From NCBI GenBank assembly GCA_964188305.1, contig OZ076893.1: a stretch of 64,000 bases of DNA; one strand, given 5' to 3'. How positions within the stretch are numbered: the first letter of the stretch is position 1; every line of letters starts with the position of its first letter. Shown here in pieces: positions 15,115 to 63,654 of this stretch. The notes beneath the pieces are model-generated. The model was given only the letters and a program-made list of their open reading frames with translations. It did not search any database and was not told the DNA's origin. Position numbers and translations under genes: made by a program. The DNA comes from Podarcis bocagei (Eukaryota).

Positions 15115-15790
15115 CCGTATTTTTTGCACCATAGGGCGCACCGGACCATAGGGCGCACCTAGTTTTGGGAGGCGGAAAACAAGAAAAAATTATTCTGAAC
15201 CCCAGAAGCCAGAACAGCAAGAGGGATCTGGCTTCTGGGATACCGTGTGGCTGTTCTGGCTTCTGGGGTAACCGCGCCAAGCCTCTTCAGGGCAGCGGGA
15301 TGAAGGCTCGCCCTGCCCAAAGAGGCTGCGCAGGGCTAAAGCAGAAGCCAGGACAGACGCGTCGCTGAAGGGGCACTGTGCCTTCTCTCTCTCTGTGCAG
15401 TGCCCCTCCTTCACAGGAAAGGTGCTGCGCAGAGAGGGAGAAGGCGCAGCACCCTTCAGCGAAGCTGGAGAAGGAACAGAAGGAGTCCCTTCTGTTCCTC
15501 CTCCGGCTTCGCATGACAGGCGCGTCGCTCAAGGGGCGCTACGCCTTCTCTCTCTCTGCGCAGCGCCTCTCCTTCACAGGAAAGGTGCTGCGCAGAGAGG
15601 GAGAAGGCGCAGCGCCCTTCAGCGAAGCTGGAGAAGGAACAGAAGGAGACCCTTCTGTTCCTCCTCCGGCTTCCAGGACAGGCGCGTCGCCGCGAAGCCA
15701 AGGAGCCTGCATTCACTCCATAGGACGCACACACATTTCCCCTTCATTTTTGGAGGGGAAAAAGTGTGTCCTATAGAGCGAAAAATACGG
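15115..15790. mobile_element. Tc2/pogo-like MITE with internal ~162-bp hairpin tandem repeat
   Basis: TIR CCGTATTTTT..GC..C.ATAGG.C.CAC with TA flanks; units start at 15353, 15516, 15678. Confidence 0.88.
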
Positions 15791-16496
15791 TAAGTCATAC
15801 CTGAAGGAGACCCATTGAAATCATGGCCAACTTGTCCCTATTTCAGTAGGTCTACTCTGAGTATGACTTGGTCACATATCAAATGGGAGGGGAAAAACAT
15901 CTAATAACCCTGGAGAGAAGTACTCCACAATGGAACATTTTGTCACAGGACCCTACTTGATTCAATTCAATTCAGGACCCTACATTCAAATTGTGTGAGT
16001 GCCAGTCGTGTAAAAGGAAGCTATCAGTAGGTTCAGGGCATCTCAAAGGTTTGCAGAAGTAGGGAAAAAGTACAAACAAACCCCAATCAGCCCAGTGATG
16101 GCAGAGCATTCCATGCCCACTAACTGGAGGTGAGGAATGGAAAGCTGGAGGGGGAGGGGCTGGATTCTTGATGAGATAGCACTCTGTGCTGCAATGTTTA
16201 ATTGCAAGTCCCACTTGGTTATGTATGTTTGCAGATGATATGTTTGCAATTCTCATTTTTCCCCATATGAGAATTTTTATATCAAAATATTGACATTTAT
16301 TCTTAGTTGATAAGCACATGATTGTAGAAAGGATAGCAAGTGATTGAGTTACTTACTGAACATATGTGAACTCCAAAACCTCAGTTTGAGGTAGCTAAAA
16401 CATGTTATAATGCTCATATCACATGAAATGAGAGTAACAAAACAAATTCTTTGATGAAGCTTATTTTTTTATATCTTGTCTGACTTCTCATTCTAG

Positions 16497-16564: not shown

Positions 16565-16849
16565 GTATGTCAGATACCTTCTGCATATTGTTTAATTCAA
16601 TTATTTTCTAATGTTCTATTTAAGTTGGTTTTGAAAAAGGAACGTTTGTTTCTGTGTTAACGTGCCCTTGAAATTCTCAAAATCTCACAGGGCTAACTAT
16701 AGACAAATGGTATTCGAAAGTCTAGTATTAATGGAGAACTTTACACAAAAATTGCATGTTGGGAGAAAGCGCTCTAAATATGATGAGTTGTATTCAACAT
16801 CATGCTAAGGCAAGTATTTGATCTGTGCAATAATTTTTCCTTGCACAAC

Positions 16850-17110
16850 ATCTTGCTTGCCCTGCCAATATCCTCCTTAAATTGTGGTGCCCAGACCAGG
16901 ACACAGTACTCCAGGTATGGTCTTTCCAAGGCAGAATAGAGCAGTACTGTTACTTCATTTGATAGGGGCACTATACATCCTAGAATAGCATTAGCCTTTT
17001 TTTGCTGCTGCATCACACTTTTGAGTCACATTAAATGTGTGGTCTACTAAGACACCTAGATCCTTTCCCACATCTTATATTTGTACATCTGGTTCTTCCT
17101 ACTTAAGAGT
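16850..17110 (-). mobile_element. CR1 LINE ORF2 3' fragment
   Basis: [10 protein letters not shown]...[25 protein letters not shown]. Confidence 0.85.
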
Positions 17111-17127: not shown

Positions 17128-17225
17128 TGCAGCTCAGTGGGTTAGAGTGAGGTGCTGATAATGCCAAGATCATGGGTTTGATCCCCATATGGGCCACCTG
17201 CATATTCCTACATTGCAGATTAATG
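17128..17225 (+). mobile_element. tRNA-derived SINE fragment
   Basis: A/B-box-like head AGCTCAGTGGGTTAGAG...GGGTTTGATCCCC. Confidence 0.6.
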
Positions 17226-26870: not shown

Positions 26871-27068
26871 GGGAAGGGTGTAGCTCAGTGGTAGAGTATC
26901 TGCTTTTGCATGCTGAAAGTCCCAGGTGCGGCTCTTGGCACCTCCAGATAGGAGTGGGAATGTTCGCAGTTTGAAACCTAGGGAAGTCGTCACCAGTCTG
27001 TGTATACAATACTGACCTAGATTGACTAATGATCTTACTCAATACAAGGCAGCTTCATAAATTCCTAA
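26871..27068 (+). mobile_element. Squamate tRNA-derived SINE (Squam3-like)
   Basis: GTAGCTCAGTGGTAGAG...CTGCTTTTGCATG head; related minus-strand copy about 44800-44986. Confidence 0.7.
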
Positions 27069-30649: not shown

Positions 30650-30800
30650 CATAGAATATTATAAACATATAATTGTAAAGTTTGAAGGGACCACAAGAGA
30701 CATCTCATCCAACCCCCCCTTCAATATAGGAATCTTTTTGCCTAATGTGGGGCTGAAACCCACAACCCTGAGATTAAGAGTCTCATGCTCTAACAACTGA
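30650..30800 (-). mobile_element. tRNA-Lys-derived SINE with CR1-type tail
   Basis: Reverse complement reads GAGCATGAGACTCTTAATCTCAGGGTTGTGGGTT; plus-strand relative at 49065-49155. Confidence 0.65.
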
Positions 30801-31269
30801 TCTGTTGTCTACACTTGTTTACAAGACATTTCCTGCATGAAGTCGCTCACATCCACTCTGTCTTGAATGCCATAGTAATTGCAGAATCATTATGTGCATT
30901 TAGAACTCTTGCTCACCCTGTTATTATGGATACACTTCATCTTGCGCATCATTGGAGGTTTGAAGCCTACAACAGGCAAGGATCGATTGTACACATAATA
31001 GCCTTATACCTCCAAGGATCTTGCAGCAAGAGGTGGAATGATTGGTTGGGTGAATCTGTAAATGCTTCTTTGAGAGAAGGCAGGAAAGGAAGTTATGGTG
31101 AAAAGGTGACTGGCAATGTTTTCTTGGATGCCACCAATCTGGGCAATTAGTCGTCTGTGTCCTGCATACCCTTTTTGGACAAAGTGCGTAAGCATCTAGT
31201 GATGGCACCCAGCAGTAACAAATATTTATTATGGCCGTAAACCAGCATAAATGACACCCAAATTCTTTA

Positions 31270-31460
31270 TATTTCTAGATAGAGGGCATTTAGATCCTTT
31301 TCAGTCTGGTTTCTTGTTTGGATTTGGGACAGAGACTACTTTGGTTGTCCTGGTAGGTGACCTTCATAGAGAACTGAACAAGCAAATAGTGTCCCTCTTG
31401 GACAGATGCTTTCAATGTCTGCTGAAGACTTATGTTTTTGCCCAGGCTTTCCCTGACTCA
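31270..31460 (+). mobile_element. L2/CR1-clade RT fragment joined to a 3' end
   Basis: LDPFQSGFLFGFGTETTLVVLVGDLHREL (QSGFRxxxxTETAL motif). Confidence 0.75.
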
Positions 31461-33619
31461 TTAAGTTTTACAAGTTTGAAATCATCCAGATTTCTGCTTT
31501 ATTTGCTTTTATGTGTTTTACTATTTCTTGCGGGTCTTAGGTTGTGTTTTTGTTTTAATGAAATATTGTTCCTTTTTAGACTGTATACCATTAGTTATTT
31601 AAAAATACTAAGTGATATATACGTACATGTTTTTAAATAAAACATGCATATAATCTTGTGCAACATCCTTTTCTGTGGATGTAACTCCCACGTTGCTGGG
31701 GATATTTGTACGAAGAAGCCTGCATGTATTGGAGCAGAATACCACTGCAGAGGTTTGCTATGAATGCAGCTTTCAAAATGAAACCATTTGGCCTAAACAT
31801 CTTGATTAATGTACTAATAAGTTTGCTTTATTGCTGTGATAACTGTATTGGCACAATAAATTTAGTGCAGTTTTAGTTTCCCCGTAAATTGATCTCTAGT
31901 GTATTGCCAGATTTAATCTTAAGATCTGTACTGTACATTACTGTATTAATAGGGAGCCTTTAAGAAAAGTGGTTTCTTGTTGACCACTCAGTTAAGTGTT
32001 TCTTGCACTAAAGGCCAATTATTAATGTACATAATATACCTATATGTCTGTCACCATTGAAAGTCTAATATTAGTTTGAGGAACCATAATAATAACCCCA
32101 CTTCACTTTTGGGACACACTACTTGGAAACTGAACTGACATGCCAATTAGGGAGCTATCTACCAAGATCTGCTACTATAAAGTTTTTTTTTCTTTCCTAG
32201 CACACTTTGGATGTTATTAAAAAGGGGGTAATCATTAAAAATAATAATTTTCAAGTTATAAAACTGCTTATATATAATAAATAATTCCCTTTTATTTTTG
32301 TCACCTGAGATGATTATATATGTCTCTTAAGTGCTATCAATTTTAGTTCATGTTTTAAGTTTTATTAAATATGGCTCTTGTGATTGCTCAAGATACTATT
32401 TTTCCATCATTTGTCCAAACAAGAGCTTAGGTTCATAACCCTGGAATTTTAATGAGTTTACAGTTGGAGCTTTGTAAGAGTTTAACATTCCAACACTAAG
32501 TCATATGTGCAATATTTCCATTTTATCTTGTATTCATCACACTGAATAACATTTTTTAATGTTCAATCCACAAAACATTGTAGGCCATACAATGTATTTT
32601 AGACTAGCTTGGATAGCCTTTTGTACTGTGGTTGTCTGGTGCAGATGTAAACTATTTGAAACTAAACCCTGTGATATTTAAAGAAATAAACAGTGTTCAT
32701 GGCATGTCCATCAGTCTTTGAAAAGTGCTTGAGAGATTTGTGTCTTGCTTTGGTTAAACAGAAAATGTTTTATTCCATATTTGCTTTGAGAAATGGTGGG
32801 AAGCACCCAGTGTTAATAGACCCACTGAAAACCTTGGGCTTAACATAACTTGCCCATTGATTTCAGTTGTCCAGCTCTGAATATGACTGACATCAAATAT
32901 CACTGAATATATTTAATTGGTGCTCTGTATATTCAGGTGTTTTCTGTCATGTGAAATAGATGAAGTAGAAATTGGAGGTCATAAACTTAGGATTTCCATT
33001 CTTTTCATCTTATATTTGCATTTAGATGTTTTAAGAATTACTCCAAATACCTTCTACATTCTTGCTTCTTATGATGGCTTCTCCTGCGTAATTCTGAACA
33101 CATGGACTCCCCAGCCCCTCTCTAGGTCTTACTTATGCTTTTGCTTCACTGCTTATTGCTCTCTTCCTGGCAACCCATCTCCTTATTTCAGCTGCTTCCT
33201 TCTCCTTCTGGTAATTCATTTTCAGCTTGCAAAGTATTTGTTTCTGCACTATGTGAAATAGAATTAAACTAAGTTGACATAGTATTATAAAACATGAAGT
33301 TTGAAAAAATACTCTTTTGGTTTGAATTTGATTCCTATGAAGTAATTATTGAATACCTCAAAATATATGAGTGGAATGCTCCTAGCAATACAAAATAAAC
33401 AGAATCTGATTATCTTGGGGCTGATTTGTGTGTACTATGCACGTGGTTCTCACTGAGTCTGAAAGAGATAAACAGTTCAATGTGGCTTTCATGCTTGTAC
33501 TTAGTTGACATATTCAATAGATAATTCCAGTTACAGATAGGTAGCCGTGTTGGTCTACCATAGTCAAAATAAAAAAAATTCCTTCCAGTAGCACCTTAAA
33601 GACCAACTAAGTTAGTTCT

Positions 33620-33661
33620 TGGTATGAGCTTTCGTGTGCATGCACACTTCTTCAGATACCA
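33620..33661 (-). ncRNA. Minimal type I hammerhead ribozyme motif (Penelope-type)
   Basis: UGGUAU-CUGAAGA-A-GUGUGC-AU-GCACAC-GAAA-GCUC-AUACCA: 6-bp stem I, hairpin stem II, palindromic AGCU in place of stem III. Confidence 0.75.
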
Positions 33662-33702
33662 GATATCTGAAGAAGTGTGCATGCACACGAAAGCTCATAC
33701 CA
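33662..33702 (+). ncRNA. Second hammerhead motif on the SPAG1 sense strand (shortened stem I)
   Basis: CTGAAGA 33667-33673, stem II, GAAA 33689-33692, predicted cleavage after C33696. Confidence 0.6.
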
Positions 33703-33967
33703 AGAACTAACTTAGTTGGTCTTTAAGGTGCTACTAGAAGGAATTTTTTTATTTTGTCAATAGATAATGTTATTGTTACTAGCATTCTAAAGATAACATG
33801 GGTATGGATAATAAATAAAAACAGCTTAATGTGATTTTTCAAAAAGATTTTTAAAAACTTGAATGCATACCATTTAAATTGTTGCAGTATTTTAATTACC
33901 GTACCTAATTAGTTTACTGCATTTTATTGCCGTCAGTGAAAAAAAACAACACCTTGTTTTTCTCTAG

Positions 33968-46668: not shown

Positions 46669-47353
46669 TTACAGGTTTAAATCTGTCTGAATTGCAGCAT
46701 TTAACTCCACAGCGTGCTGTGAATGGTTGTTGTTTGCTTCTTTCAGTGTTTCACCAGTACCCATATCTGCAACACTTGAAGTCCCATTATAAACACATTC
46801 TTCAGCAATGTAACTCAGCTGTGGAGCCTCTGAGTTTGGAGCAGCTGGAATCAGCAACGAATTGCCACTTTGGTGTGGAGAGTTTTCTAAACGGTCATTT
46901 TCTACCTCTGGGAGAATGTTAACTGTGGTAAACCGGGTATGATAATCACTGGAACCATGGCTACATGAGGTTTTCATACTCTCCATATCAGAGCAACTAA
47001 ACTCAGAAAAATGACTTGAGTGGGAATCAGCTACAGATGGGATACTGTCACTGAGAGAGGGAGAGTCAAATTCACTGGAGTTTGTGCTTTGTTGCTCTAA
47101 TAATTGAGCATCCATGTCCTCTCTGGTCTCATTTATCTTCATGCTACTCTTTTTTCTTAGTTTACCTTTGCATTTTTTCCCTGCCGATGCATCTTTGGAC
47201 CACTTGGTGGCACTAGATTTGTTTTCTGACAAGCAACCAGCGTTACTTTGACCTGCAGAACTACCATCGTCAACACTACTGCTGCCACTGTTGTGCCTGA
47301 ATTTTGTGGGTTTTGATTCAATGTCTACTTGTACCTCCATACTGCTGCTATCT
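46669..47353 (-). CDS. RNF19A: E3 ubiquitin ligase RNF19A (dorfin), last coding exon
   Basis: DSSSMEVQVDIESKPTKFRHNSGSSSVDDGS...AAIQTDLNL*. Confidence 0.96.
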
Positions 47354-54285: not shown

Positions 54286-55134
54286 TCTACTGGTCCCAAA
54301 AGGTTAGCAACCCCTGCTCTAAGTCAACATCTGTGACTCAGTATAACAAAGAAGCACCTGGGTCAGATGTTCTGACTATCCATATCCAAATAAAAATACA
54401 ACAGAGAGTACAGTGAAGTTTTTCACTCTAAATCAAGTCAGTAATTATACTCTAAAGCGATGCCAACTCCTTCCCCTTGCCCAAGATTCTGATGAGGTTT
54501 CTGGCTGTCCAGTGTGAAATAAGTTCACTGACAAAGCAAGGCATTATATGCAGTCAGTCCTCTTGCACAGGTTACCAAGGAGCTTATCATAGGTAAGTCA
54601 ACAGATAGCCTGTTTTCACTTCATATTGTATAAATCTTTTGCCTTTAAAACAGGTGGGTAGGCAATGGTTATCAGCTGCAGAAGTGTAAGCACAAGGGCA
54701 GTTTTTTTGAAATAAAAAAAATCTAGTATAGTAAGCTCTGTCCTTCACTTTGTACTTAAGTCATTGCTTATATTTTGAAGGCCTCCCCAAAAGTAATCAT
54801 AAAAACAAAATAATTCATGAATGGAATCTCAAACCAAGGCAATCATGAAAATGTCTAGTTTCACTGCACTGTGATCTTTGGATGAAGTATGGTAAAGAAA
54901 TTTAATAAATAATAACAACAACAACGATATTGGTTAACCTCTATTAAGTCAACCATTATCAGTCGACTTTTGGATCATCTGTTTATGAAAGTTTGCACCA
55001 TTTGCATAATGCTAAAATAAGGGCTACTGGACTCAGCTCTCCTTTCTTAATAAACATCAATAATCAGTGAACAAAACAGTTATCTGATAGTTTAAAATGT
55101 TTTAAAGACACCTAGTATTTCAGTTAATAAATAC

Positions 55135-55343
55135 CTGCTGCTCCAGACTCCTGGCTGTAGCTAATGGACGAAGAACGAATTGTTCGCAAGCGTAGGCTCT
55201 GGGCTCTCTCCTGGCGAGCAGCATCACAAGTCTGGTTGGGATGCCAAATTTGTTTACAATGATAGCAAAATTCAGTTCCACAGCCTTCACGTCCACATGT
55301 AAGTTTAGGACAGCTTGCACACCCAAAAGCGATTACAGCATAC
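55135..55343 (-). CDS. RNF19A: RNF19A coding exon 2 (IBR)
   Basis: [44 protein letters not shown]...QESGAA. Confidence 0.97.
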
Positions 55344-57652
55344 CTTAAAATGTTCAATAATAAGTAGGGGGAAGATTGTTATTCTCAGTACTGCACAGTG
55401 GCAAGAAGAAAAGCTGACTTTCGGGGATAAATTAAGAAATATCCCTTATTCTGAAAACAAAGCTCCATTGTCATTGTGATCTAGCTAACAAAACTCTGAA
55501 GATCTGAACCTAACAATCTAAGTCCTTGTATTTCACTCTCTGTGTAGCATGTACTCTTTGATCTAAGTCTCAAGTTTAACAATGAGAATGGTACATTCCA
55601 GATTCCCACATTTCTAAATGCTTGGTGCTGACCTCAAGCCATCTATAATAATTGTGTTATTTTTTAAGGTCTTTCAAAGTTGCACACATTTTAGTGGTTA
55701 AGAGTTAGCCCAAATAAACTATGTAATTGCAGTTGCTTGTGTTCAGTGAAGCCCACAGTAGACACTACAAATGACAAATAAGCAATCAATAGGTCTAATC
55801 TTAAATTCCCCAAATCACCTCATCAAACTAAGGCAAAAAGGAGTACCCACCAGTTGCTTGCAGCCATTTTATATAGTAACTTGAGTTGTGAGAATAAAAT
55901 TAGTTATTCTCAAAACCTCTTAAAGCCAAACTATAGGGAACTACTATCCTCAAAAGCAACAAAAGGTCAATGTTGTGTAGCGTGAACTAATATAACTTTA
56001 AAAAAAAACTACTTCCAATCCTGTGACTTGTCTGCTATATAAAATACGACATAAGGACCATCTCAGGCTTCCTCATCATCACTGTGGCAGCCAATGACTG
56101 GAACAGAAGATCCCACTAAAATGCAGTCTCTGATCCTGCATTCAAAATGTTATCTCCTGGTTCACCCTTTATGTTCCCTCCATGGTGTGGAAGCATTGGG
56201 AGGAATGTGGAAGCCCAAGGTTTGCTCTGAATTTCACAATCTGCAAAATCCCAGGGGCCCAGGTCCAGCTGAAAACAAGCTTAGAGTCAAATAATATTTC
56301 TGAGAACACAAAGTTGATGGTAATCTTAATTTTCATATTCCAACCCAACAATTATCAGAGAGAAGTGGGACACATTGTATCAAACAGACATAGTGCATAT
56401 GTGGCAGAAAATCAGTGAGCACTGGAGAGTTAACAGCGTCTCTTATAATACACAAGAGGTTTGACTCTGAAATTAAGCTGTTAATCCCAGCTTTTCCCCA
56501 TGAACATTCTCTAATCAATAATAGTAATGCAATAATGCCATTTGTAGAAGGGAAGGCATGTTCAATAGACCAACAGGGATTCTGACCCCTTTTGTGTAGA
56601 AATAGGGGCTTTGCTGGCAGAATCAGAGAACAGAGGTATAAAACATTAGGCGTCTGCATTTCAGTCTTCTCACATGCTTAGAAACTAATCCTCAGTATCT
56701 AGAAGCATCAAGCCTCAGGCTGTTTGAAGATATATGGGGGGGGGGGAGAAGAAGAGAGAGGAGGAGGGACAGCGACACTTTTGTACTATAGGCTACATTG
56801 CAGCTACACAAATACTTCAGGATTCCACAGACACACACACATACCCCATCCTCCAGCTAGGCAACAGCAATCAAGGAGGATGCAGAGCAGGGCTGATGAA
56901 AACTAACTTGGAGAGGAGGCATAGCCTAGGGAGAGTCCCAAGGGCTAGTGGGAGAGGTCTGTGGGGCTGTGTCATTCCCAGATTCAACATACTAAGCAAC
57001 AGCACAGCACAACAACAATGGGGAGGAGCAAAGTTCTCTGATCTTTGCCCTGGGAGCCTGTGCAATTGTGCCAAGCCATGGTTTGGCTTAGCATGACATA
57101 TGAAGCAGGCCACTCACAGAACTTGCTAGTCAACAAAAGAGAACTGATGTACTGTATATTAAAAATCAGCACACTTCTGGGCGCAGACTGTTTATATCAG
57201 GAGGGAACCTCAGGTGTAGGAGCTAAATGCAGGCCTCCAAGCATTTCTATCTGACACTTGGGACTAAGCCCAGCTCATGCCTCCTTCCCAGACTACACCA
57301 GCCCTACTCTATGCCTACCTTGATACCTTTTGGCAGGCTGGTTTTTGTGTGGTTGGAATGTAGCTGACCTCAAAGAAGTAAGAGTCATCCATAGCCACAC
57401 CCATGTTTTGTCTCTGGCCTACCAATTACATGCTTCCCTCAGAAGGTCACCGTATAGTGGCCCTCAGTATGCAAAATGCTCCCCATCCCTGGTTTATATT
57501 ATTGCTTTATTTGTCATCTAATATCTTGCTTTATATCTTAAAATATTTTTAGACTGGGCAGTTTTTGTTTTTAATGCATGTATTGTCTTTTTGGCATTCC
57601 TCTTTCAAGAAGGAAAGTGGATATTTTTATCCCAATCTGTATTGGATATGTA

Positions 57653-58347
57653 CCGTATTTTTCGCTCTATAGGACGCACTTTTCCCCCTCCAAAAATGAA
57701 GGGGGAAAGTGTATGGGTCCTATGGAGCGAATGCAGGCTTTCGCTGAAGCCTGGAGAGCGAGAGGGGTCGGTGCGCACCGACCCCTCTCGCGTTCCAGGC
57801 TTCAGGAAGCTATCCGCAAGCCTGCGGAGCCCAGCGGGAACTCCCGCCGGGCTCTGCAGGCTTGCGGATAGCTGCCTGCAGCCCGAAGCCCGGGGAGCGC
57901 GGCGCTGTGCACCCCGGGCTTCTGGCAGCTCTCCGCAAGCCTGCGGAGTCCAGCGGGAGTTCCCACCAGGCTCCGCAGGCTTGCAGACAGCTGCCTGCAG
58001 CCCAAAGCCCGGGGAGCGTGGCGCTGTGCACCCCGGGCTTCGGGCAGCTCTCCGCAAGCCTGCGGAACCCGGCGGGAGTTCCCGCCGGGCTCTAAAGGCT
58101 TGCGGATAGCAGCTTGCTGTCCCCGAAGGCACCCCGCCGCCCTGCGGAGGCTACAAAGGATGTCCCCGAAGTCTCAAGCCTTTGGAGTGCAGCTGCGCCA
58201 CAAGCTCGGGGGCAGCGGCAAGGCCTGCTCTTGAACGCACCTTGTTTTTGAGGGGGAGAACAAGAAAAAAAATCCCCCCCTATTCGCCCCCTCCTATGGT
58301 CCAGTGCGTCCTATGGTCCGGTGCGTCTAATAGAGCGAAGTATACGG
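57653..58347. mobile_element. Tc2/pogo-like MITE with 119-bp palindromic tandem array
   Basis: TIR CCGTAT..TTCGCTCTAT.GACGCAC; TA flanks; units at 57808, 57927, 58046. Confidence 0.88.
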
Positions 58348-59944: not shown

Positions 59945-61179
59945 AGCTGAAATCAGCAGAGGAGGACGTGGCATACTGTTGTGTAAATTTTGTGTAGGAA
60001 GGTTTGTATGATTTAAGGTAAGGCAAGTTCAGGGGGGAGTGAAAGATGGATGGAATGTTTGTGTGTGTTGTGTGCTGAATGACAGGGTAGCTTATGGCAG
60101 AATAGGTATGTGTCTGGAGAGTGACAGTTGGGTTTTTGGGGGAAGTGAGAGTAGCTGGTGTGGGTGCTGAGGAGTAAGGGGTAGAGTAGGTTGGATAGGA
60201 TACAGTTAGGAATAGAGGTATAAGCACGTGTTAAAATATTTAAAAAATAACACCGTTGTTAAAGCAAATCCCATAAAAACCTGTTATATTCAGCGTTTAC
60301 TATACTAATGAAGTTTTGTTTGTTCCAATCACGTTTCATATTTGACCAAGCTATCACAGCTATGACAAAATAAGTCAGAGATAGGTGTTTATATGGTAGC
60401 AGCAGAATAACAGCAGTTAGGAGATTGCTTGAAGTTTTGAGAACCCAGAGCTGGGAACCGAACAAGGCAACCGAAGGTGGGGAAAGTGGTGAGAGGAGCT
60501 TTACCAAGCAAAACAGTGATTAGAATGAAAAGTACCCTCTTGCTCCTCCCAAGTAGTGGGCTTGGAAAGGGAAGAATATGACAAAGGGTACACTTGTTCT
60601 GGCTTAATGATGACAATCAAATGTGTTTCCTTGAATATTAAAACATTTGCAGCTTAGGAAAAAGTATTCTGGCATCAAGCAGCTACAACAAACTGGTTTA
60701 TGCTCTCTTATACTGAATTTCTACTGGCAGCCAATATTTGGGGTTTCTGGCATTAAAACTGCCAATGCCAGGATGTGTAACTACAAAGTTAACTTCTTTA
60801 TTTTATAAAAAACTTTCACAATTTACACTCAAGAAACTGCTAGGTTTCTTTTCAAAGTGTATTAAAATATTTCTATTTTATTTTAAAGGAACTAAAGTCA
60901 CTCCTTTAAACACTCTACAGTGTGAAATAACAGCGTTTACCAGAATAAATCTGCCTGTCTGTTCTTTTACTTTGTCTCATCTATGCCATGAAACAATAAG
61001 GACTACTTAGCACAACCTGAGCAATATGAGGGAGGCACAAAACTTCAAATGTTAAAATAGTTACAAATTAGTAGACAATTAGAGCAATTTAATGAACTGA
61101 ATAATATATTTCAGGATGACGACAAGATCCATGTGCTTCATTAGAATGGGTAGGAAGGGGAGTGGAGATAATAACTTAC

Positions 61180-61775
61180 CCACAATCAGGAGCAGGACAC
61201 CACCTACAATCAGGGTCTGCCACAAGCCATCTTCTAAGCATAAATTCTTCATATTTTTCCATCAATATGTCATCATTTAATATCAATCGAATATCATGGG
61301 GATTGAATCGCTCAGAGCACTCTGGACAGCTGATATTAACTCTGCTCTCAGAGATTTCTATCCGGAGATACTGACGTAAGCAATCCACACAAGATCTATG
61401 GTGACAAGTCATTATTTCCGGAAACCTCTCCTTGGAGTGTCGCAAAAGGCACAAGGGACACTCCATGAAGTCTCCGCTCTGTTTGCTGATGATGGTTGTT
61501 CCATTGTCAGAAGACGTATAGGCAGAGAAAATAGAGTTCTTGTCCATACACATTTCCGAATGTATGCTTTCAATACTTGCAATGCCATCCACACCTCCGT
61601 TTATATCTCTGGACTTGCGTTTTGTATCCCTTTTTCTTCGAAAGAGAGACCCCAGTGAAATCCTTCTTTTCTTTGGTGCCTTTTTAATTGAAGGCAAGCT
61701 TACAGAGGAGGCAGAAGATTGCAAGTCTCTATCAGATCCCATTTGCCGATGTAAACTCATGGCTAAAACATTCAT
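61180..61775 (-). CDS. RNF19A: RNF19A first coding exon (RING1); start at ATG 61775 or at the conserved MSLHRQ ATG 61760
   Basis: [24 protein letters not shown]...ECPLCLLRH...CPAPDCG; acceptor at 61961, in-frame upstream TGA at 61809-61811. Confidence 0.95.
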
Positions 61776-63654
61776 CAGAAATGGATCAAAGCATGTGTAC
61801 AACACTGATCACTTTAAGGAAAAAATGCCTATTGAGAAGCAGCACACTTAGAGGTCATGTTGGGGAGGGGGCTAAGTCATGTTATACATGGTCGGGTCTG
61901 TCTTCTTCACATACAAAATTCTTCACGACATATAATTCCAGGAAACTCTTCACAGCAATTCTACAAATGAAAGGGAAAGACAAGAGACAAATTAGCATCA
62001 CATATATTCAGGTTCTTTGTTGTTTTCAGAGGACTTGTATTACTCTGCTAACTCCTATTACAGCTACCTCATCAACTAAACCTCCACCTTGTTTGCTTCA
62101 GCCACCTGTGCACTTCTGTCAATTAGCAAGTTGATATAATCAAGGGGTGGACCTTTTTTTGTTACAGTTTAATGATTATACTATATAGGATGTATACAAC
62201 AAAAAGAAATAATCTAACAAGGAGAATTGCTTGGGAGTTTTCCATTCTGGTGAAATTGATGCATTATTTAAGAACTAAGGGAAAAAAGCAACATGATAAC
62301 TTCATGGCAAGCTAGAATCCTTTTATTATCGTAGCAGCTTAATATGCTTTGAGTTGCAGGGGCTGTAAGACAAAGCGACACAAATGCTGAATATGCCAAA
62401 AGGCGATATCCTATATAGGTGGCAGAAGTGCACAAAGGGGGGGGGGGAGAACTGGAAAAGGATTGTTAATCACACTGACAATCCTCCCAAGTTATAGATG
62501 CATTTAAATCCAGTATTTTATTGAACTCTTACAAGGGAGACACTGTTATTGATAACGCTGATAAAAAGCAAAGGAGAGAGATAAGAACAACCAAACTCCC
62601 CAGTTAGATAGCCCAACTGACCCTGAGTGTCGTCTTGTTCAGGCAGGACCATGGAGAAAGTGAGTAGAACCAGCTGTAGCTAATAATGGACATCCAGTTA
62701 CAAAACCAGCGCAGGCAAGCTGCAGTGGGTGTCACTGGCAGGGCACCCGTTAGGGAGACACCAAAAGAGAACTCTCCCCTTTGGCCTGTGCATTCGGGGT
62801 TGCAACAAGGGTACCCTCCTGCTGGTTGGGTTTCTATTTCCTGTGGTGTGTCTGTGATGTGGGTAGAAAATGTCTGAGTACCAGGTGAGAGGAAGGAGTA
62901 CCAGGGAAGGGTCTGTGCAGTTCCACCTATCCTTGGGTGAGAAATAACAAAATGGGCGAGAGCCAGATTGCTATGCATTTCTTTTGATAGTTTACAGTTC
63001 TGACAGTGAATAGTTTCATTAACTCCTGGTGATTCTGCATACATTTTTAGTAGAAACAGTAGAATGATTGGTCACAGCAATGTGGCGAATGAGAGGGAGA
63101 TATTGGAGTAACGGAGTGGATAATGTATTTTTAATGATGGATGTGTGTGAGTTGTGGAAGTGAAATGGGACGAGTGATACGGTTGGGCAGGTGGTAGTAC
63201 ATTATTTGTATTTATGTAGAAGGGAAATTGAGAATACATTTAAAATAGAATCTGGAGTGATATGCATGTATTACTGGAATGAGTTTTGCTTATTATGAGT
63301 AAACATGTCCCTTGGTAATAAGAGTGAAATTGTTTCCAAAAAAGTACTACTATGTTTTGCTTTAGGGGGAAAGTTATTATTTTATTTTGTATTGTAGTTC
63401 TTCAGTTTCATTGTTTATAAATATATTTGTTACTTTTGTAACCCCCTTAAGACACTTTCTGGGCATAAAAAGGTATATAACTCTATCAAATAAAAAACAG
63501 GAGACACACAGCTTCATATTTTCTAGTACTTCCCTCTTAAATATTACCGTTTTGGCCACATAAGCAACAGCACTCACATAACTGAACTGGAATCAGAAGA
63601 CAAAATGCTGGTTATTAGGAAAGAATGGAGACATTTGTTTACATCAACTATGAC

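Follow-up and report, generated by a model that had tools for sequence, protein, structure and literature searches.

The window analysed here is a stretch of 64,000 nucleotides (nt) from Podarcis bocagei (contig OZ076893.1 of GCA_964188305.1). It contains a short insert, very probably derived from a Penelope-like element (PLE), in what can reasonably be read from the exon-like sequences around it as an intron of a plus-strand SPAG1-like gene. The insert spans 33526-33756 and measures exactly 231 bp. It lies between two copies of a 12-bp target site duplication (TSD), TCAATAGATAAT, at 33514-33525 on the left and 33757-33768 on the right, neither of which has a strand. Both were identified by repeat search. 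Only two of the 12 letters of the TSD are G or C, and the GC content of the 3′ flank is 24-26%, compared with 39.5% for the whole window; the insertion target is AT-rich. Inside the insert, a 94-nt arm at 33565-33658 and a 93-nt arm at 33664-33756 form an inverted repeat. The arms are 98% identical and differ by one mismatch (A at 33736, G in the other arm) and one indel in a T/A run. The left arm extends 39 nt beyond the right arm, out to 33526. A first-pass annotation of this DNA had described a 231-bp insert with a perfect 12-bp TSD and 94/93-nt arms that differ by one mismatch and one indel, and the repeat search reproduced every one of these values. No further copy of the element was found in the window.

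The 39-nt extension (33526-33564, minus strand) is the 3′ tail of a minus-sense copy and is present at this end only. It holds an AC-rich stem-loop, GGUAG-ACCAACACGG-CUACC, with a folding energy of −8.8 kcal/mol, and its end belongs to one of the terminus classes of the repeat family. The body of this 5′-truncated minus-sense copy (33565-33659, minus strand) tracks the family sequence until 33659, where other copies go on with ACTGAAACAGAAGT. The letters CAGA at 33660-33663 (no strand) join the two truncated copies; the family consensus departs at 33660, and these letters are either filler or belong to the right arm as a few diverged bases. The second copy (33664-33756, plus strand) is 5′-truncated, plus-sense and without a tail. 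It terminates in ...TATTTTG, which repeat search and the ends of family contigs identify as the main tail-less 3′ terminus of the family. The copies are shortened to 93-134 nt each, and neither an open reading frame (ORF) nor a tandem pseudo-long terminal repeat (pLTR) is present in the insert. Around the junction, the hexamer CAGATA is present at 33653-33658 and again at 33660-33665.

A hammerhead motif is found on each strand. The 35-nt string CTGAAGAAGTGTGCATGCACACGAAAGCTCATACC has exactly two occurrences in the window, at 33621-33655 (minus) and 33667-33701 (plus), with 0 expected by chance. String search, descriptor and fold place a minimal type I hammerhead at 33620-33661 on the minus strand (UGGUAU / CUGAAGA-A / helix II GUGUG-CAUG-CACAC / GAAA-GC-U-C17 / AUACCA), and a minimal hammerhead in the sense of the host gene at 33664-33699 on the plus strand, in which stem I is UAU/AUA only. 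The core letters CUGAAGA (C3-U4-G5-A6-N7-G8-A9) and GAAA (G12-A13-A14) are present on both strands. A single unpaired A separates A9 from G10.1 (a bulge of 1 in the descriptor), and the G10.1-C11.1 pair is in place. The helix III hairpin is absent; in GAAA-GC-U-C, the letters AGCU are self-complementary, with a palindromic 15.2/16.2, A15.1...U16.1 and an H at position 17. Helix II consists of 5 bp and a 4-nt loop. Stem I has 6 bp in the minus copy and 3 bp in the plus copy. The family helix I is 4 bp long (GUAU/AUAC), and the bases that precede GUAU are unpaired with the 3′ strand of helix I. Stem I of the minus copy exceeds this length because the junction letters 33660-33663 add two pairs, so that two of its six pairs come from these letters and not from family sequence. 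C17 is 33626 in the minus copy, with a predicted cut between 33626 and 33625, and 33696 in the plus copy, with a predicted cut after 33696. The first-pass annotation had proposed a hammerhead core on each strand with these same cut sites, and the positions of C17 agree. Position 17 varies in the family between C and U only (33626, 33696), and both letters are allowed.

The descriptor was taken from the published minimal hammerhead ribozymes (min-HHRs). It comprised CUGANGA with 0-1 extra base, a helix II of at least 4 bp, GAAA, a self-complementary 15.2/16.2 followed by U and H, and a helix I of at least 3 bp. In 64 kb, it matches just the two sites in the insert, against a mean of 0.003 matches per window in 300 first-order resamples. 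The Rfam hammerhead models (types I, II, III, HH9, and HH10) gave no match at E ≤ 10 on the insert or on a single arm, and none at the gathering score across the window. This is expected because the Rfam models include the helix III hairpin. Of the two kinds of search that the first-pass annotation had put forward as a check, the descriptor thus recovers both sites, and the covariance models recover neither. When the minus arm was folded in isolation, its minimum free energy (MFE) structure formed the junction of helix I and helix II, and the MFE structure of the plus copy was without stem I. A microRNA precursor was considered as a candidate and rejected: the best Rfam match, MIR1222, scored 67 bits against a threshold of 90, and the matches were generic long-hairpin matches on both strands.

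Helix II, GUGUGCAUGCACAC, is a perfect 14-nt palindrome (33634-33647 and 33675-33688) and the sole direct repeat within the insert. In cofolding of two sense arms, the best dimer had a 14-bp intermolecular helix II with the strands of helix I swapped, and not an AGCU helix III. In this model, the palindromic helix II may serve as a second dimerization interface for the hammerhead family. An AUG in loop II opens a frame (33681-33710, plus strand, mirrored in the minus copy) that closes after nine codons in both arms. Downstream of this AUG lie mirrored polymorphic sites of the family (33704/33618, 33708/33614, and 33723/33599). Preferential conservation of the core was assessed from family variants of at least 10% of depth: within the 42-nt hammerhead only position 17 varies, and about six sites vary across the remaining 94 nt of the arm. 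This difference falls short of significance and describes only reads of at least 90% likeness.

We compared the region 33376-33906 with assembled contigs from three DNA runs and with raw reads from a single RNA run. In two related species, here called B and E, contigs of 1362 nt and 2259 nt, respectively, join 33513 straight to 33757; their flanks show 0-1 mismatches. These empty sites are without 243 bp, equal to the insert and one copy of the TSD, and carry the TSD as a single copy. The direct joining of 33513 to 33757 confirms the TSD and both boundaries independently. Since the sites in B and E are precisely empty, the insertion is lineage-specific and young, which bears out the recent insertion claimed at first pass. 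In a second sample of the window's own species, contigs from each flank enter the insert at single-copy depth with 0-1 mismatches, and no empty-site contig was listed. The insert has private differences from its family at 33557 and 33736, where 96-100% of the family depth is G, which accords with its youth.

The source family is extremely abundant in the three species. Summed word depth, which measures depth and not copy number, is 0.2-2 million inside the insert and about 14 in the flanks. Beyond 33659, contigs and 344 RNA reads agree on a single continuing sequence (agreement 0.81 in RNA). The source element therefore extends further than the copy in the insert, and both arms are 5′-truncated just upstream of the hammerhead. 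The 3′ ends of the family fall into two classes approximately 40 nt apart. Many contigs stop at 33565 and at its mirror position 33757 (21-35 contigs per run), and others stop near 33521-33530; the insert has one end of each class. At least 15 joints between a left arm and a right arm at other positions were listed, plus 106 more, and most of the listed depths are about 10-45, as for a single locus. Several joints are common to more than one species, and some are asymmetric (33607 to 33680 and 33659 to 33728 are examples). Head-to-head copies with varied, often asymmetric truncation points are common in the family. At 33571 the family is polymorphic: one base is missing from about 29-36% of the depth in the window's species and in species B. 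Family transcripts are present in the RNA run, which comes from a related species.

The min-HHRs of PLEs have a palindromic helix III without loop 3 and are also described as dual motifs on opposite strands 100-700 bp apart; helix I is 4-5 bp, and helix II is 7-8 bp in the main families and 6 bp in D. virilis (PMC4209133). The motifs of the insert resemble this class (Cervera & de la Pena 2014, PMC4209133) in their cores, the extra base, G10.1-C11.1, GC at 15.2/16.2, U16.1, C17, and, in the family sequence (4 bp), a short open helix I; they form a pair, one per strand, with a spacing of about 100 bp. The same description agrees with the first-pass reading of the AGCU helix III as one of dimer type. 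Unlike the helix II of the main families, that of the insert has 5 bp and a 4-nt loop, and all 14 nt are palindromic. The architecture of PLE insertions is marked by an inverted 5′-truncated copy, a tail of 30-40 bp often at one end, a TSD of variable length, and heavy 5′ truncation (PMC8557442; PMC8969392); the optional 30-40 bp tail is described in PMC11167929 and PMC8557442. All four hallmarks of general PLE insertions (Craig et al. 2021, PMC8557442; Goubert et al. 2022, PMC8969392) recur here, with an inverted 5′-truncated copy beside another, a tail on the left end only, and a 12-bp TSD at an AT-rich site. The Penelope-type palindromic insertion named in the first-pass annotation is upheld by these features together with the min-HHRs. 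What differs from general PLE insertions is that both copies are cut down to 93-134 nt, without ORF or tandem pLTR. From the hallmarks, a parent element with reverse transcriptase (RT) and a GIY-YIG endonuclease would be expected.

A second close comparison is with Poseidon_Ac (PAc), the element of Anolis carolinensis (Frangieh et al. 2024, PMC11167929). In vitro, the protein of this element (a predicted dimer) both cuts and extends the two DNA strands. [quoted passage not shown] The ORF starts in helix II, and the hammerhead ribozyme is dispensable for insertion (all PMC11167929). As in PAc, an AUG lies inside helix II/loop II of the insert, and the predicted cut falls 16 nt after its A (26 nt in PAc). 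Counted from the helix II AUG, the 3′ ends of the insert are at +76 and +116, compared with RT starts at +111-118 in PAc, where the 30-40 nt tail lies between two start sites. Further shared points are the AC-rich stem-loop where reverse transcription starts, the AT-rich target, and a product compatible with priming from each of the two strands. The hammerhead itself differs (in PAc it reads CUGAGGA-U-GCCUGCC...GUGGGC-GAAA-CG-UC), and, unlike in PAc, the frame in the insert closes after nine codons.

We consider it likely that the insert records one retrotransposition event of an abundant PLE family of a lacertid-type lizard, in which two 5′-truncated, hammerhead-bearing terminal regions were placed head to head by two-ended priming. 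For the priming step taken by itself, from one staggered cut, our confidence is somewhat better than even. In the proposed mechanism, a GIY-YIG endonuclease would nick the AT-rich target twice, 12 bp apart, and leave 3′ overhangs. Each 3′-OH would then prime reverse transcription of the element RNA, so that the 3′ ends of the RNA would point to the outside and border the duplicated target. One end would start at a tail-proximal site, 116 nt after the helix II AUG, and the other at an internal site, 76 nt after it; these different start sites would leave just one side with a 39-nt tail. Both cDNAs would stop just upstream of the hammerhead and be joined with 0-5 extra letters. The hammerheads would be passengers; they belong to the published class, which needs a second sense copy to cleave and, in the anole element, also the protein.

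The same palindrome might arise from a single target-primed reverse transcription followed by snap-back, in which the 3′ end of the cDNA folds and copies itself into the second arm. The arms stop no more than 5 nt apart at the center and are nearly identical, as snap-back would have it, and the CAGATA repeat could give microhomology for the switch. A self-copy should repeat the outer end, yet only one arm has the tail, and the other ends exactly at the canonical tail-less terminus of the family (33565/33757). The arms also differ in the length of the T-run, which fits two separate reverse transcriptions because the family is polymorphic at that same place (33571). Other head-to-head copies of the family are strongly asymmetric (33607 to 33680, 33659 to 33728), and cleavage and extension of two strands have been seen in vitro for a lizard PLE (PMC11167929). 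Because of the one-arm tail, the canonical tail-less other end, the T-run difference at a polymorphic site, and the asymmetric family copies, two priming events are favored, and we regard snap-back as unlikely.

Far less probable is that the palindrome recently moved as a whole, as a small non-autonomous unit of its own (MITE-like, foldback, or retrozyme-like). The insert is compact, non-coding, TSD-flanked, young, and of an abundant family, and the frame of the helix II AUG is closed in both arms, all of which would suit such a unit. The family contigs show no fixed unit but many arm-to-arm junctions and many single-arm ends, and the RNA reads that continue upstream of the truncation point speak for a longer source element. 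The outer ends are unequal, and the head-to-tail tandem found in retrozymes (PMC7229834) is missing. Non-LTR retrozymes of metazoans are head-to-tail tandem repeats that give circular RNAs (PMC7229834); what they have in common with the insert (Cervera & de la Pena 2020, PMC7229834; Li et al. 2026 preprint, doi 10.64898/2026.07.22.740005) is short non-coding DNA and type I hammerheads related to PLE pLTRs. The insert differs in consisting of one inverted pair; a tandem copy is absent, and there is no hint of a circle. The recently mobilized palindromic unit of the first-pass annotation is not supported, given the many and varied junction points in the family. The insert looks like a doubly 5′-truncated dead-on-arrival product, and is read so because its arms end at two different family-typical 3′ termini and the junction points vary among copies. 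Two independent insertions, with a second copy beside or inside the first, are scarcely credible. A family so abundant, which favors AT-rich DNA, could land twice at one place, but the filled and empty sites differ by a single 243-bp block with one 12-bp duplication and no inner duplication.

Several points weigh against a PLE origin by two-ended priming, or soften it. No RT or GIY-YIG ORF of the family was seen, and the window holds only the 231-bp copy. The closed frame after the helix II AUG may mean that the template lineage was not the autonomous one. The likeness to anole Poseidon is one of layout and not of demonstrated sequence homology; the family is a different one, and strings of our element were absent from the supplements of PMC11167929. 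A full-text literature search for diagnostic strings of the element gave no paper, and scans for the hammerhead pattern in contigs of metagenomes and prokaryote genomes were blank, in collections that are not expected to hold lizard DNA. The differences between the arms could be post-insertion mutations, which would weaken the case against snap-back. Finally, the junction contigs of the second sample of the same species reach just 24 letters into the insert, mirrored on both sides, which is below our rule of 31 letters for bridging.

The host gene was assigned from coding matches on either side of the insert. An ORF with a TPR motif lies at 25.5-26.0 kb on the plus strand (a weak Pfam match with E = 0.0028, below the cut-off), and an RPAP3_C domain at 38.4-38.9 kb, also on the plus strand, has E = 2e-15. 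Exon-like RING/IBR ORFs on the minus strand (46669-47340, 55124-55357, and 61176-61805) indicate an RNF19A-like RBR ligase gene downstream of the SPAG1-like gene and converging on it. This agrees with the SPAG1-RNF19A part of the human gene order POLR2K-SPAG1-RNF19A, and the SPAG1 assignment is reasonable because the order matches. The location in a SPAG1 intron given at first pass is consistent with these matches: the insert lies between the TPR ORF near 25.9 kb and the RPAP3_C domain, with the RBR ligase beyond on the minus strand. The left arm places an AATAAA (33568-33573, plus strand) in the intron in the sense of the host gene; similar hexamers occur in the AT-rich flank (near 33811), and the hexamer is probably without effect on the gene.

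The first-pass annotation had further seen in the insert a potential self-cleaving motif in the pre-mRNA of a ciliary gene. The catalytic core letters are indeed intact with C17 present, family transcripts exist in a related species, and the anole PLE hammerhead cleaves in the presence of its protein (PMC11167929). The folding calculations point the other way. The insert folds as a 92-bp hairpin with −163.5 kcal/mol (z = −27), and enforcing the hammerhead fold costs 62.9 kcal/mol in the plus transcript and 60.8 kcal/mol in the minus transcript. The motifs are not expected to cut the SPAG1 pre-mRNA because each pairs with its own complement in this hairpin. The pre-mRNA carries the plus copy, the weaker of the two; its 3-bp stem I is absent from the MFE structure, and helix III needs a second sense copy, of which the transcript has none. 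Single min-HHRs are inactive; for dimers, activity was low and seen mostly at Mg2+ levels outside the physiological range (PMC4209133). RNA ends did not accumulate at the predicted cut sites in the family reads of one RNA run, from a species without the insertion, and no such accumulation was seen in the anole data (PMC11167929). A cut in an intron would also be of little consequence once splicing is committed. An active plus-strand hammerhead in the SPAG1 pre-mRNA, alone or in trans with other family transcripts, is on these grounds most improbable, and this claim was set aside. In the folding model, a long intronic double-stranded RNA stem is a more plausible consequence than self-cleavage. 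We would also entertain, as a long shot, that the 92-bp hairpin in the SPAG1-like pre-mRNA of the one lineage carrying it is a substrate of Dicer or ADAR and yields small RNAs against a still-active Penelope family. If true, intronic head-to-head insertions would be built-in silencing triggers. A smaller point is that the insert looks like a trace left in vivo by two-ended priming, in which each end would have chosen independently between the two RT start sites known from the in vitro work.

Other repeats were observed elsewhere in the window. Weak matches to the tRNA model, just above the Rfam gathering score (31-32 bits), occur at 17131-17188 (plus), 26874-26946 (plus), and 30747-30803 (minus); two are partial, and the three are probably tRNA-derived SINE heads in introns and not tRNA genes. 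Two GC-rich segments approximately 42 kb apart, 15378-15793 (plus) and 57591-58132 (both strands), have long ORFs on both strands and encode near-identical peptides (...SLHSLHRTHT..PFIFGG.KV.PIERKIR) in opposite orientation. This pair looks like two copies in the window of a second repeat family. The translations of the ORFs at 16774-17016 (minus) and 31251-31640 (plus) resemble, by eye, the C-terminal and RT parts of CR1/L2-type LINEs, and would be further retroelement debris in the SPAG1-like gene.

By itself the insert is of little weight. It is one more copy of a PLE repeat, of a known kind throughout; every feature has already been described for PLEs, and the insertion is real but ordinary. 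Its dating is clean, with the site filled in one species and exactly empty in two relatives, and it could be used as a presence/absence marker. The unequal ends of the insert and its T-run lengths agree in vivo with the cutting and extension of two strands and the two internal RT starts seen in vitro for the lizard Penelope protein. The insert also makes a case against reading such motifs as active ribozymes in host transcripts: hammerhead motifs in inserts of this kind are not to be read in that way, because the inverted copy masks the fold.

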